The notes under the pieces are model-generated. The model saw only the letters and a list, made by a program, of their open reading frames with translations. It made no database searches and was not told where the DNA came from. Shown here in pieces: positions 1 through 62,341 of a stretch of 64,000 nt of DNA. The stretch is taken from the sequence record MN695334.1. One strand, written 5' to 3'. Position 1 is the stretch's first letter, and each line of letters opens with the position of its first letter. The position numbers and the translations under genes are program-made.

Positions 1-210
1 GTAAATACAAATCTATTAATTCTAGATGAAATTCTTGATGGCTCTATGGATGCTGAGGGAATCTCATTGTTTCTGGCAATTATTCGCAAAGAAATGAAGA
101 GTAAGAATATCTTTATGATATCGCATAGAGATAACATAGATGACAAGTTTGACGTTGTTATTAATTTTAAAAAAATAGGTCATTTTACATCTAAAGAACG
201 GATTAACTAA
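1..210 (+). CDS. gp46: Recombination endonuclease ATPase subunit (gp46/SbcC-like), C-terminal fragment; truncated by window start
   Basis: Frame 1 reads VNTNLLILDEILDGSMDAEG...IFMISHRDNIDDKF...GHFTSKERIN*: Walker B LILDE, D-loop and H-loop SH. Confidence 0.9.
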   Translation, partial: VNTNLLILDEILDGSMDAEGISLFLAIIRKEMKSKNIFMISHRDNIDDKFDVVINFKKIGHFTSKERIN

Positions 211-318
211 ATAATAGTGCCTGAATTAGTTCGCGCTTAACAGGTGGGGAGATTTATTTCTCCTCTCTATTAATAAAATTTTCTAAATATAAATAGCGAA
301 CTAATTTAGAGCAGAAAA
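208..318 (+). promoter_or_regulatory. Late promoters and structured leader of endonuclease gene
   Basis: TAAATA 208-213 and TATAAATA 288-295; perfect 11-bp inverted repeat AATTAGTTCGC 224-234 / GCGAACTAATT 296-306; inner hairpin 246-265. Confidence 0.7.
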
Positions 319-1404
319 ATGGTCAAGCAAAGTCCACGTATCTACGTATACAAAATTACGTTTGAAGAAGTCCAGTACTATTACTACGGATTTCATAAGG
401 AAAAGAAATTTGGTGAGTATTATATGGGCTCACCAGTTGTAAATAAATGGGTTTGGGAATACTATACTCCGAGGATACAGATTTTACAAGTTTTTGATTT
501 TACCGACGAGGGGTATAAACAAGCCAAAGAAATAGAAAATAGACTGATTAGACCTTTTTATAATACGGATCCCCTTTGTTTGAATGAACGATGTGGTGGT
601 AATTATTCACTAAAAATTTGTAGAGAGAACGGTAAAAAATCGGGACAGAAAACTTATGAACTGGGTATAGGAATTCATCGATTTTCTTCTGAAGAAAAAA
701 GTGAAGCTGGTAAAAAAGGAGGAAATACGAATAAACAAAATCGCACTGGAGTTTGTGGACTAACTCTAGATCAAAGAATTGAAGCCGGTAAAAAAGGAGG
801 AAAAATAAGTGGGGAAAAAACATATGAACTTGGTATAGGAGTTCACGGGAGATCTAAAGAACAAATGTCCAAAGATGGTAAAAAAGCTGCTCAAAAATGC
901 AAAGAACTTGGCGTTGGAATTTATGAACTAACTTTTGAGCAAAAAAGTGAAATTGGTAAAAAAGCTGCCGAAACAAATAAGAAAAATGGTACCGCACTTT
1001 TTTCAATGACTTCAGAAGAAAGAAGTGGAGCTGGTAAAAAGGGAGCACAGACAAATAAAGAAAATGGAACTGGTATTTATGGGATGACTTTTGATCAAAA
1101 AAGTGAAGTGGGTAAAAAAGCGGCCCAGACAAATAAAGAAAATAGAACTGCAATTTTTGCAATAACTCCAGAAGAAAGAAGTAAAATTGGTAAAAAAACG
1201 GGACAAAAAAATAAAGAAAATAAAACTGGTGTTTGTGGACAGTCCCAAGAAAAAATGAGTGAAAATGGCAAAAAAGCATCTAAAATTACCAACTCACAAA
1301 AATGGCAATGTAATGTGACTGGATTTATATCAAATGCTGGTCCACTTTCAAGATATCAAATAAAAAAAGAAATTAGTACTTCAAATAGAAGTCGAATTCA
1401 GTAG
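319..1404 (+). CDS. Free-standing GIY-YIG (Seg-like) homing endonuclease with about 8 tandem 26-aa C-terminal repeats
   Basis: N-terminal IYVYKITF...YYYGFH...YMGS, E..IENRLI and LNERCGG; repeats of GKK(A/G)xQTNKENxTGxxxxTxE(Q/E)xS; paralog at 61670. Confidence 0.8.
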   Translation: MVKQSPRIYVYKITFEEVQYYYYGFHKEKKFGEYYMGSPVVNKWVWEYYTPRIQILQVFDFTDEGYKQAKEIENRLIRPFYNTDPLCLNERCGGNYSLKICRENGKKSGQKTYELGIGIHRFSSEEKSEAGKKGGNTNKQNRTGVCGLTLDQRIEAGKKGGKISGEKTYELGIGVHGRSKEQMSKDGKKAAQKCKELGVGIYELTFEQKSEIGKKAAETNKKNGTALFSMTSEERSGAGKKGAQTNKENGTGIYGMTFDQKSEVGKKAAQTNKENRTAIFAITPEERSKIGKKTGQKNKENKTGVCGQSQEKMSENGKKASKITNSQKWQCNVTGFISNAGPLSRYQIKKEISTSNRSRIQ

Positions 1405-40774: not shown

Positions 40775-40884
40775 CGGGGAATAGCTCAATGGTAGAGCAA
40801 CGTAAAATATATCTAGTTTAGATATTAACTGCAATTTAAAGCATTCGGAGCCGTTGGTTGTAGGTTCGAATCCTGCTTCCCCGA
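40775..40884 (+). tRNA. tRNA with TCG anticodon (Arg) carrying a 38-nt insertion (40803-40840) in the anticodon stem
   Basis: Acceptor CGGGGAA/TTCCCCG, D arm GCTC/GAGC, T arm GTAGG-TTCGAAT-CCTGC; deleting 40803-40840 gives ACGGC-ATTCGGA-GCCGT. Confidence 0.8.
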
Positions 40885-41342: not shown

Positions 41343-41591
41343 ATGGATTCAAATTTCGTTAACTCATTCAAATCAATGTCACTGACCACAAAATTTAAAA
41401 AAGATATTCAGGTACTGCGGCAAGCTGCTAATGGTGAATTTTATTTGGACGTAAAAAATCCAAAACTTTTTAAAAAAGTAAAACGTTACTATGAAGATGT
41501 TGGTGTAGTTTTTTCTGGTGATCCTGAAGATGATTATGAAATGCTGATCGATTACCTATATGAAGATCTTGAAGTACAACCGGTTGCGTAA
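41343..41591 (+). CDS. Conserved cyanophage hypothetical protein
   Basis: TKFKKDI..LR.AANGE.YLDVKNPKLFKKV.RYYE..GVVFSGDP; start could be 41343 or a later ATG. Confidence 0.7.
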   Translation: MDSNFVNSFKSMSLTTKFKKDIQVLRQAANGEFYLDVKNPKLFKKVKRYYEDVGVVFSGDPEDDYEMLIDYLYEDLEVQPVA

Positions 41592-41817
41592 TTTAGATAA
41601 GTTTACAACTTATAGATATCTTGGAAATTTACTTATTATCGTTGGATACTACATTCTACTTTGGCAAAGTGAGTCTGTCGGTTTAATCATAAAGCTAGTT
41701 GGGACTCTCATGGCCATACCTTCACTTTATGTCCTTAAGTTGTGGGATGCTTTGGTTATATGTGGATTCTTTGCTCTGATTGAATTTTCAAGATTACTTT
41801 ATTTAATAAATCAATGA
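41560..41817 (+). CDS. Small membrane protein
   Basis: RYLGNLLIIVGYYILLW...; three hydrophobic stretches; start uncertain. Confidence 0.6.
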   Translation: MKILKYNRLRNLDKFTTYRYLGNLLIIVGYYILLWQSESVGLIIKLVGTLMAIPSLYVLKLWDALVICGFFALIEFSRLLYLINQ

Positions 41818-42605
41818 TAGGATTTAACTCTTTGGGTTTACTGGGTAGATTGGGTAATCAAATGTTTCAATATGCTTCTTTAAAAGGTATTGCAAATAAG
41901 AATAATTACCAATATTGTATTCCCCCCTCACATAATATTGATGAATGGAGAGATCATCAACTCTTCAACTACTTTACTCTTAAGAATCTTAGTAAATTAA
42001 ATATTCAGTATATTAAAGCTGGAAGACCTGTAGTACATGAAGCGTCTTTTGGTTTTGATGAAAAGCTTTTTGATGAATGTCCTTTTTGGGTCAGTTTAGT
42101 TGGGTTTTTTCAATCTGAAAAATATTTTAAGCATATTGAACGAGAAATTAGAGAAGACTTTACCTTTGTGAATTCGATTTTAATTCCATGTCAAGAAGCT
42201 ATTACAGATCTGAAAAATCCAGTTTCATTACATATACGAAGAACTGATTACTTAACTAATCCGAATCATCATTGTTTACCTTTAAGTTATTATGAAAAAG
42301 CACTTGGGCAGTTTGATAGTGATAGAGCAGTAATCATTTTTACGGACGATCCAGATTGGATCTATACGCAAAAATTATTTTCAGATGATCGATTTGTTGT
42401 TTCTCAGGGTCAATCAAACTACATGGATCTTTGTTTAATGTCTTTGTGTGGTGGACACATTATCGCAAACAGTAGTTTTTCTTGGTGGGGTGCCTGGTTA
42501 TCAAAATCTCGAAAAATCATCGCACCTTCGGATTGGTTTATTGGTTCTAGCAATGCACACCTAGATACTAAGGATTTAATTCCAAGTGAATGGGAGCTAT
42601 TATGA
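41814..42605 (+). CDS. GT11 alpha-1,2-fucosyltransferase-like
   Basis: GRLGNQMFQYA, GFFQSEKYF, SLHIRRTDY, IANSSFSWWGAWL. Confidence 0.92.
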   Translation: MIGFNSLGLLGRLGNQMFQYASLKGIANKNNYQYCIPPSHNIDEWRDHQLFNYFTLKNLSKLNIQYIKAGRPVVHEASFGFDEKLFDECPFWVSLVGFFQSEKYFKHIEREIREDFTFVNSILIPCQEAITDLKNPVSLHIRRTDYLTNPNHHCLPLSYYEKALGQFDSDRAVIIFTDDPDWIYTQKLFSDDRFVVSQGQSNYMDLCLMSLCGGHIIANSSFSWWGAWLSKSRKIIAPSDWFIGSSNAHLDTKDLIPSEWELL

Positions 42606-61542: not shown

Positions 61543-61547
61543 TTGAC

Positions 61548-61669
61548 TAAATAGTACGTCTGTCTAGACTGCAATCTCTACGGGCAAGGCTAGGTGCTCT
61601 TTATTGGTCATCTAGCCTTCTATAAAAAATTATTTAAATAAATAATAGTGCAGTCTAGATAGAATAGTA
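61548..61669 (+). promoter_or_regulatory. Late promoters and structured leader of endonuclease gene
   Basis: TAAATA 61548 and 61635/61639; inverted repeat TCTAGACTGCA 61563-61573 / TGCAGTCTAGA 61649-61659; inner AAGGCTAG/CTAGCCTT hairpin. Confidence 0.7.
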
Positions 61670-62341
61670 ATGACTAAACAAAGTCCACGTATTTACGTAT
61701 ACAAAATTACGTTTGAAGAAGTTCAGTATTATTATTACGGATGCCATAAAGAAAAAAAGTTTGGTGAGCATTATATGGGGTCGCCAGTTACAAATAAATG
61801 GGTGTGGAACCATTATACTCCCCAAATACAAATTCTACAGTGTTTTGAATTTAGTGATGAAGGTTATAGACAAGCTAGAGAAATAGAAAATAGATTAGTC
61901 GGGTCTGTTTTTAATAAAGATAGATGGTGTTTAAATGAACACTGTGGTGGAACACATTCTTTAAAAATTCTTAAAGAGAATGGCCAAAAAACCTATGAAC
62001 TTGGTATTGGAGTTCATGGGAGAACTAAAAAACAAATGAGTGAAGATGGTAGAAAAGCTGGTCAAAAAAATTATGAAAATGGCACCGGATGTTTTTCACT
62101 GACTCCAGAACAAAGAAGCATTGTTAGTAGAAGAGCAGGACAAAGAACATATGAAAATGGCACCGGAATTTTTTCGATGACATTAGAAAAAGCAAGTGCG
62201 GCTCGTAAAAAAGGAACCCAAACAATCAACTCTAGAAAATATCAATGCACTAAAACTGGATATATTTCTACTGCTGGGCCACTTTCTGTATATCAAAAAG
62301 CCAGAAGAATTGACACTTCTAATAGAGTCCGAATACAGTGA
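61670..62341 (+). CDS. Free-standing GIY-YIG homing endonuclease, short-repeat paralog of 319-1404
   Basis: Near-identical N-terminus KQSPRIYVYKITFEEVQYYYYG and similar C-terminus; only about 3 repeats. Confidence 0.8.
   Translation: MTKQSPRIYVYKITFEEVQYYYYGCHKEKKFGEHYMGSPVTNKWVWNHYTPQIQILQCFEFSDEGYRQAREIENRLVGSVFNKDRWCLNEHCGGTHSLKILKENGQKTYELGIGVHGRTKKQMSEDGRKAGQKNYENGTGCFSLTPEQRSIVSRRAGQRTYENGTGIFSMTLEKASAARKKGTQTINSRKYQCTKTGYISTAGPLSVYQKARRIDTSNRVRIQ

Follow-up and report, generated by a model that had tools for sequence, protein, structure and literature searches.

A conserved structured leader ahead of homing-endonuclease genes in freshwater and estuarine cyanophages

Expression of a homing endonuclease has to be high enough for the gene to spread and low enough to spare the phage that bears it, and T4 reaches this balance by gene-specific hairpins that hold a late promoter. 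A late promoter lies within an inhibitory hairpin at I-TevI, I-TevII, I-TevIII and segB of T4 and at mobE of phage Aeh1 (PMC2988022), and the early read-through transcripts of the T4 genes e (lysozyme) and soc fold an inhibitory structure with the late promoter inside it (PMC3014915); in this scheme the ribosome-binding site is covered by a helix in transcripts from upstream, and translation is limited to the late transcripts (PMC2988022, PMC3014915). Here we examine a leader of about 100 nucleotides (nt) that is found ahead of more than 130 endonuclease genes, belonging to at least three families, in cyanophages of fresh and estuarine waters, and that occurs twice in the window analysed, which is the last 64 kb (64,000 nt) of the 244,930 bp (base pair) genome of Synechococcus phage B3 (MN695334.1, Kyanoviridae) and is present in identical form in phage B23. 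Window base 1 is record base 180931, and positions given below are those of the window unless a record or locus number is stated. The two window leaders occupy 206-318 (locus a) and 61546-61669 (locus b), and their features are collected in Table 1.

We read this segment as the DNA of a conserved structured 5' leader RNA that would travel with free-standing homing-endonuclease genes of T4-like cyanophages. Its parts would follow one another in the order: a first late-promoter-like box (P1), a left arm, a segment that can pair back with the left arm (giving an alternative hairpin, HA), a terminator-like hairpin (T), a second box (P2), a right arm complementary to the left one, five to six free bases and the AUG. 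The likeness to the T4 homing-endonuclease hairpins that hold a late promoter, to which an earlier note on this DNA had drawn attention, is apt (PMC2988022). As in T4-type endonuclease leaders, a predicted helix occludes the ribosome-binding region of transcripts from upstream, a TATAAATA-type late promoter lies inside the structure, the late transcripts would lack the 5' arm, and the gene is that of a homing endonuclease. Unlike those leaders, the B3-type leader has a helix that is long-range and encloses a predicted intrinsic terminator, a second invariant late-promoter box placed exactly at the 5' arm, a conserved and covarying alternative hairpin of that arm, no consensus Shine-Dalgarno sequence, and an AUG that is outside the helix. 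Whereas the T4 hairpins are gene-specific, the B3-type leaders form one homologous, portable family that serves at least three endonuclease families. The e and soc leaders of T4 belong to host-phage genes and have no embedded terminator, second promoter at the 5' arm or alternative hairpin.

Two further arrangements invite comparison. The PeSL cassettes of T4-type phages, which Arbiol and co-workers are said to have described in 2010, are short, repeated stem-loop and promoter modules that reportedly flank genes of a mobile or variable kind and may help to shuffle them; their promoters are said to be early ones, the stem-loop reportedly has no long-range arms around it, and a translational role is not known to have been proposed for them. 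F-CphI of cyanophage S-PM2 is a free-standing endonuclease for which regulation at the RNA level has been proposed, with CfrI as a true opposite-strand antisense RNA (PMC2984593). Like the B3-type leader, the S-PM2 F-CphI locus (L184:690-765) has a terminator hairpin followed directly by TATAAATA, and like the B3 genes the adjoining open reading frame (ORF) has a C-terminal repeat domain, but P1 and the complementary arms are lacking. S-B05 (L185:1225-1335), a marine relative like S-PM2, also has a reduced version, a 7-bp arm pair around a small hairpin with no P1.

A leader shared among endonuclease families

The earlier note had assigned the leader to two genes; the layout it described stands, and its scope was too narrow, since the leader is a family-wide element common to at least three endonuclease families and has a third copy in B3. 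Searches of viral contigs and of metagenome contigs yielded 80 loci each, chiefly from lakes, reservoirs and estuaries, and one full-length homolog is in phage S-SRM01. Extraction gave 155 leaders that reduced to 128 unique ones, and 122 distinct leaders were aligned (MAFFT). A TAAATA box lies 90-122 nt 5' of the ATG in 127 of the 128 unique leaders, nearly all of which have the same order of parts with differing arms; because 122 distinct homologous leaders repeat this layout with arms that differ, it is not due to chance. The one exception, L010 (1300-1503), is also the sole homolog of the main protein family (that of the two window genes) that is without the leader; only a GC-rich terminator hairpin stands ahead of its ATG, and it can serve as a natural control.

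A covariance model of the leader, run against the whole B3 genome, found three copies, two of them in the window. The third is outside it, at record positions 41,442-41,541 (L176:1442-1541), with arms unlike those of both window copies; with the gene behind it, it spans record positions 41,442-42,162 (L176:1442-2162), and that gene encodes a 207-amino-acid (aa) classical GIY-YIG/NUMOD3 endonuclease (PF07460, E 7.9e-16). The model also places the leader 5' of genes for HNH endonucleases with a C-terminal repeat domain (L012, L013 and L007). An independent scan for the architecture alone (two boxes 50-115 nt apart and a duplex of -17 kcal/mol or better, on both strands) covered the 245-kb B3 genome and about 180 retrieved loci. 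It gave 183 matches, all of them 5' of endonuclease-type ORFs in the same orientation save one with no callable ORF; within B3 there were three matches and none elsewhere in the genome. The classical GIY-YIG gene at L025:2960 bears a leader of the main family's sequence class, and the leader therefore moves between endonuclease families. That one homologous leader precedes at least three families of endonuclease suggests that the regulatory module itself is mobile.

The leader family is absent from Rfam (at the gathering threshold only tRNAs were returned, and the matches at E up to 10 were at chance level) and from the papers searched, and it is specific to the free-standing homing-endonuclease genes of these phages. 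What is gained is a well-defined RNA motif that Rfam does not hold, and with it a practical marker for free-standing endonuclease genes that profile libraries miss, such as those of the main family, which has no Pfam match.

Covariation of two mutually exclusive helices

That the arms differ while their pairing is kept had been taken as a sign of selection on structure, and the very strong covariation of the long-range helix across the 122 aligned leaders bears this out. RNAalifold, with no structure supplied, recovers the helix and finds compensatory changes in 11 of its 12 pairs. In a 16-pair version of the helix, 94.4% of the cells hold standard pairs, compared with 70.9% in shuffled controls (0 of 500 are as high) and 31-45% after the partner has been shifted along the alignment, and both sides have changed in 14 of the 16 pairs (476 cells). 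The helix is 13-21 bp long, and there are 84 distinct left arms among the aligned leaders; duplexes of a leader's own arms have a stability of -23.5 ± 1.8 kcal/mol, against -10.5 ± 4.5 kcal/mol for arms combined across leaders.

The alternative pairing of the left arm was scored between alignment columns 14-19 and 38-43. These six outer pairs of HA are 92.2% paired, against 80.0% in shuffled and 17-47% in slid controls, and double changes are present in five of the six. In left-arm columns 15 and 16 there is covariation with each of the two alternative partners: the triplets at one of these columns are T/A/A in 60 leaders and C/G/G in 53, and at the other C/G/G in 88 and T/A/A in 21. Since the local fold also covaries, the earlier suggestion of a two-state leader has real support, and the family offers a rare case of two mutually exclusive helices that both covary. 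A claim for the inner stem of HA was dropped, as its columns are out of register across subfamilies in the MAFFT alignment and the counts there are mixed; only the outer six pairs are claimed.

Both helices tolerate one of the two possible mispairs more than the other. G-U outnumbers A-C by 183 to 21 (about 9:1) in the long helix and by 87 to 19 (4.6:1) in HA, and because an element acting as DNA would treat both alike, the counts point to an RNA of the + strand and not to a DNA repeat; the structure is selected at the RNA level. This asymmetry disfavours the alternative, also raised in the earlier note, of a DNA inverted repeat bound by protein. In such an arrangement the repeats beside the boxes would be operators bound by the endonuclease (autorepression), or else a cruciform or recombination site for movement of the cassette. 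I-TevI does bind an operator that overlaps its own late promoter (PMC2988022), each arm here directly follows a promoter box, and the arms vary among genes as target specificity might. We nonetheless regard a DNA-level element as highly improbable: besides the asymmetry, the 3' strand of HA is a third segment that covaries with the same left-arm bases, and essentially the same class of leader stands before endonucleases with unrelated DNA-binding domains (NUMOD3 type and repeat type).

On a tree of the coding DNA that follows the leaders, parsimony gave 351 concerted changes in the long helix compared with 10-35 in slid controls, and 79 compared with 1-7 in HA; these totals are not numbers of independent compensatory mutations, because they are due in part to exchange of whole leaders.

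Predicted control of endonuclease expression

In cyanomyoviruses the late promoter has been reported to be NATAAATA (PMC2984593), and the 8-bp box from -13 to -6 is the whole of a T4 late promoter (PMC2988020). In none of the 122 aligned leaders does TAAATA vary at either position, and the base before it is always A or C. The P2 TAAATA lies 4-6 nt ahead of the right arm in every one of them, which places a late promoter, by motif alone, inside the structure. Pairing begins 5-7 nt past P1 in 102 of the leaders and 5 nt past P2 in 92, and with the T4 geometry transcription from P1 is predicted to begin at the first base pair of the left arm and transcription from P2 at the second base of the right arm. 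In 90 leaders 5-6 nt separate the end of the helix from the ATG. Between the left arm and P2, a G+C-rich stem-loop with a U tract, of the kind that a scanning tool takes for an intrinsic terminator, is present in 119 of the 122, and that of locus a was flagged by the tool itself. Folding in silico puts RNA structure over the ribosome-binding region of transcripts that start upstream, with the AUG outside the helix: the mean unpaired probability of -22 to -8 is 0.13 in the long (P1-started) transcript and 0.67 in the P2 transcript, and A/G-rich stretches (AGAG, TAGAA) sit at the 3' edge of the helix.

From these features we consider it fairly probable, and better supported than the alternatives below, that the leader keeps the endonuclease gene silent unless it is transcribed from its own late promoter, by a combination of occlusion in cis and termination. 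RNA from the upstream gene or from P1 would fold HA first and then mostly stop at T, while RNA that reads through T would go on to make the right arm, which would pair with the left arm, a nucleation site for this pairing being already exposed in the HA loop. The resulting 13-21 bp helix would bury about -22 to -6 of the translation-initiation region, and such RNA would be poorly translated. RNA started at P2 would begin within the right arm, lack the left arm, have a short open leader and be translated. The terminator should thus stop most incoming transcription and the helix deal with the read-through, and the gene would be insulated from the transcription of its neighbours and expressed only from its own late promoter. 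This would be the T4 scheme of I-TevI, segB and mobE with a terminator, an upstream promoter box and an alternative fold added. An attenuator or riboswitch was considered and rejected, since no antiterminator is possible: HA and T abut without overlap, and pairing of the left arm cannot prevent formation of T because the partner of that arm lies 3' of T.

Several points weigh against occlusion and termination in cis. A search of RNA sequencing runs listed none, from this phage or its relatives, that holds the locus, and promoter activity, start sites, termination and the effect on translation are all predictions from sequence. At locus b the stem of the internal hairpin is good and its U tract poor, the helix excludes the AUG, the predicted accessibility of -14 to +5 differs only modestly (0.39 vs. 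0.55), and there is no clear Shine-Dalgarno sequence, in that the leaders have no GGAG-type sequence and only the A/G-rich AGAG or TAGAA. Relatedness among the leaders, and the passage of whole leaders from gene to gene, inflate the counts of covariation. An efficient terminator would leave the helix largely redundant, and, as silencing of read-through needs no P1, no reason is given for a conserved P1 exactly at the left arm. The conserved alternative hairpin and the near-complete right arm that is kept in the P2 transcript are likewise unexplained.

The flush and invariant P1, the conserved HA and the retained right arm would all be expected if the RNA from P1 to T paired in trans, an alternative that is compatible with action in cis and that we hold to be possible, though doubtful. 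An RNA of about 60 nt, made up of HA and T, would pair with the 5' end of the P2 mRNA and either block ribosome entry or mark the mRNA for a double-strand RNase, and so set a threshold on endonuclease synthesis. Regulator and target would be encoded on the same strand by an inverted repeat, with P2 about 90 nt downstream, as a portable cassette, and the private arms of each gene copy would keep co-resident copies from cross-talk. In IS10, the stable stem-loop RNA-OUT has a loop whose sequence can pair with the very 5' end and the ribosome-binding region of RNA-IN, the transposase mRNA, and RNA-OUT is transcribed from the opposite strand. Unlike RNA-OUT, the putative regulator here would come from the same strand, upstream of its target, with complementarity supplied by the inverted repeat; all boxes and arms are on the + strand, and the architecture matches occur only in the orientation of the gene. 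We know of no described precedent for a same-strand, inverted-repeat antisense pair controlling homing endonucleases. The leader most probably extends the T4 kind of control, and a self-encoded trans regulator would be its potentially new part.

Much of the layout is consistent with pairing in trans. P1 is kept as the 7-mer (A/C)TAAATA in 122 of 122 leaders, its predicted start is the first base pair of HA, as expected of a stable 5'-flush hairpin, and with a terminator-like element in 119 of 122 leaders the predicted P1-to-terminator RNA has a median length of 60 nt. A P2 mRNA that starts, as predicted, at the second base of that arm's downstream partner, the right arm, would keep almost all of the complementarity. 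A nearly invariant left-arm GCA lies in the HA loop opposite a nearly invariant UGC at the 5' end of the mRNA, so that in silico the loop presents complementarity to the mRNA 5' end and ribosome-binding region, and when the two predicted RNAs are cofolded, 99% of 138 leaders form at least 10 intermolecular pairs, the net gain being -14.1 ± 2.9 kcal/mol. The three B3 copies, like other co-resident copies, never share arms. On the other hand, the small RNA from P1 is a thermodynamically feasible product that we infer, and orthogonality between the arms of co-resident copies does not exceed that of random pairs (-9.4 vs. -10.8 kcal/mol, 22 pairs), which gives no sign of selection for arm specificity; as co-resident and random pairs are alike, this comparison does not separate cis from trans action. 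P1 may also be kept for other reasons (the stop codon of the upstream gene is inside the P1 box in 53 of 109 cases, and at locus a P1 has the position of a native promoter of the neighbouring gene), and it is not obvious what regulatory advantage a repressor would bring if a promoter of the same class made it in fixed ratio. As the copies within one phage have unlike arms, the leaders are a clean natural system for setting occlusion in cis against antisense pairing in trans.

A role in processing or stability appears unlikely. The helix, stacked on the terminator hairpin, would in that case be an RNase III-type site or a 5'-terminal protective helix, and would serve to part the endonuclease mRNA from the message upstream or to fix how long it lasts, without affecting ribosome binding. 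The uniform stability of the duplex (-23.5 ± 1.8 kcal/mol over lengths of 13-21 bp) and a predicted P1 start flush with the helix agree with such a role, and RNase E processing has been reported for T4 segB and segG and for Aeh1 mobE (PMC2988022). A helix of 13-21 bp is, however, short for RNase III, no cleavage site can be identified in the sequence, and the consistent end of the helix 5-6 nt from the AUG would be left unexplained. A short ORF from an ATG after P1 was also considered and was set aside, as it is missing in several subfamilies.

The two B3 loci and their proteins

The elements, letters and coordinates that had been given for loci a and b are all present, and in both leaders the arms form a perfect 11-bp helix that is extended by G-U, U-A and C-G pairs. 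At locus a the 11-nt cores are AATTAGTTCGC (224-234) and GCGAACTAATT (296-306), and the extension pairs 221-223 with 307-309 (C-G, U-A, G-U); the minimum-energy fold pairs 218-234 with 296-309 plus 311-313. The 15-nt arms of locus b are 93% complementary. Leader a folds at -34.5 kcal/mol (z -5.65) and leader b at -43.8 kcal/mol (z -6.68), and in each case 0 of 200 shuffles folded as well. With the right arm left out of the folded sequence, both loci give two neighbouring hairpins, HA and the internal hairpin, and the local fold of the left arm described earlier is thus predicted by folding, as well as covarying in the family. In HA of locus a, 219-223 pairs with 241-245 and 228-230 with 235-237 inside it, which consumes the 5' half of the left arm.

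Table 1. Coordinates of the endonuclease genes and of the predicted leader parts at the two window loci.
Feature	Locus	Position	Strand	Remarks
P1 box CTAAATA	a	207..213	+	First late-promoter-like box; predicted start near 219
Left arm	a	218..234	+	From fold and covariation
Alternative 5' hairpin HA	a	219..245	+	From separate fold of the upstream part and covariation
Terminator-like hairpin	a	246..275	+	Stem-loop 246-265, U-rich tail
P2	a	283..295	+	Overlapping boxes CTAAATA 283-289 and (T)ATAAATA 288-295
Right arm	a	296..313	+	Ends 5 nt short of the ATG (319)
Endonuclease gene a	a	319..1404	+	361 aa; GIY-YIG-like N-terminal domain, then C-terminal repeats
P1 box CTAAATA	b	61547..61553	+	5 nt past the phoH stop; predicted start 61559
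Left arm	b	61559..61573	+	From fold and covariation
Alternative 5' hairpin	b	61558..61585	+	61558-61563 with 61580-61585; from separate fold and covariation
Internal hairpin	b	61586..61619	+	Arms 61586-61596 and 61609-61619; U tract below family consensus
P2 boxes	b	61635..61644	+	TAAATA 61635-61640 and 61639-61644; predicted start G61650
Right arm	b	61649..61663	+	Ends 6 nt short of the ATG (61670)
Endonuclease gene b	b	61670..62341	+	223 aa; paralog of gene a

The upstream neighbour of gene a is the recombination gene gp46, and that of gene b is phoH. The gp46 stop codon TAA (208-210) overlaps P1 of locus a, whose TAAATA is at 208-213, and the spacing from P2 to the ATG at this locus is typical of this phage's other boxes. 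Directly after gene a, 1405-1457 is a diverged copy (about 62% identity) of 150-213, that is, of about 18 last gp46 codons plus CTAAATA; gene a therefore brought a replacement C-terminus for gp46, and the original end is the remnant at 1405-1457, which still gives a promoter box to the next gene (ATG 1483). P1 of locus a matches this native promoter of the next gene in position. As a general explanation of P1, a duplicated native promoter was rejected, since a diverged duplicate of the upstream flank, placed after the gene, stands out clearly from shuffled controls at no more than 5 of 123 loci; the score of locus a is near the top (19) and barely above its own controls, the duplicate there being shown directly.

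In the window as a whole MTAAATA is under-represented (44 found compared with 60 ± 7 expected) and strongly biased towards the coding strand (36, with 8 on the other), and it is mostly intergenic, typically 21-32 nt 5' of an ORF start; the 7-mer has the behaviour of a signal. It could serve to map the late transcription units of B3.

Genes a and b are the only two copies of their protein family in B3. They are 67% identical across their common part and differ in the number of C-terminal repeats. Pfam and PDB (Protein Data Bank) sequence searches with the main family gave no match, so that it is recognised solely via fold comparison; PHROG 314 ("homing endonuclease") matches gene b with E 3.7e-7. 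An AlphaFold (AF2) model of the N-terminal 110 residues, built from 48 sequences, has a pLDDT (predicted local distance difference test) score of 82.7, and its top structural match is the catalytic domain of I-TevI (Z 6.8, root-mean-square deviation 2.6 over 77 residues), followed by the GIY-YIG nucleases T4 EndoII, UvrC, HIGLE and Slx1. Foldseek likewise ranks I-TevI first, weakly (E 0.39). The model has the alpha/beta fold of GIY-YIG enzymes and keeps their conserved Tyr, Gly, Glu and Asn positions; Tyr11, Tyr21, Tyr22, Gly24, Glu73 and Asn89 are invariant in the family and Tyr9 is present in more than 90% of its members. The identification of these genes as endonucleases thus agrees with the fold, and the label is reasonable for these putative nucleases.

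The C-terminal halves (640-1400 and 61990-62340) are made up of repeats that vary in number, each about 25-30 aa long and roughly of the form ...NGTGIF..T.EE.S..GKK.G..., for which Pfam has no model. The same repeats are found in the HNH endonucleases of L012 and L013 and in the S-PM2 ORF S-PM2p181 (L184:1186-1815) that adjoins F-CphI, and they may be a modular DNA-binding array. In another part of the window, tRNA models match a cluster of five sites between 37656 and 41253, one of which (40775-40884) is 110 nt long and hence carries an insertion.

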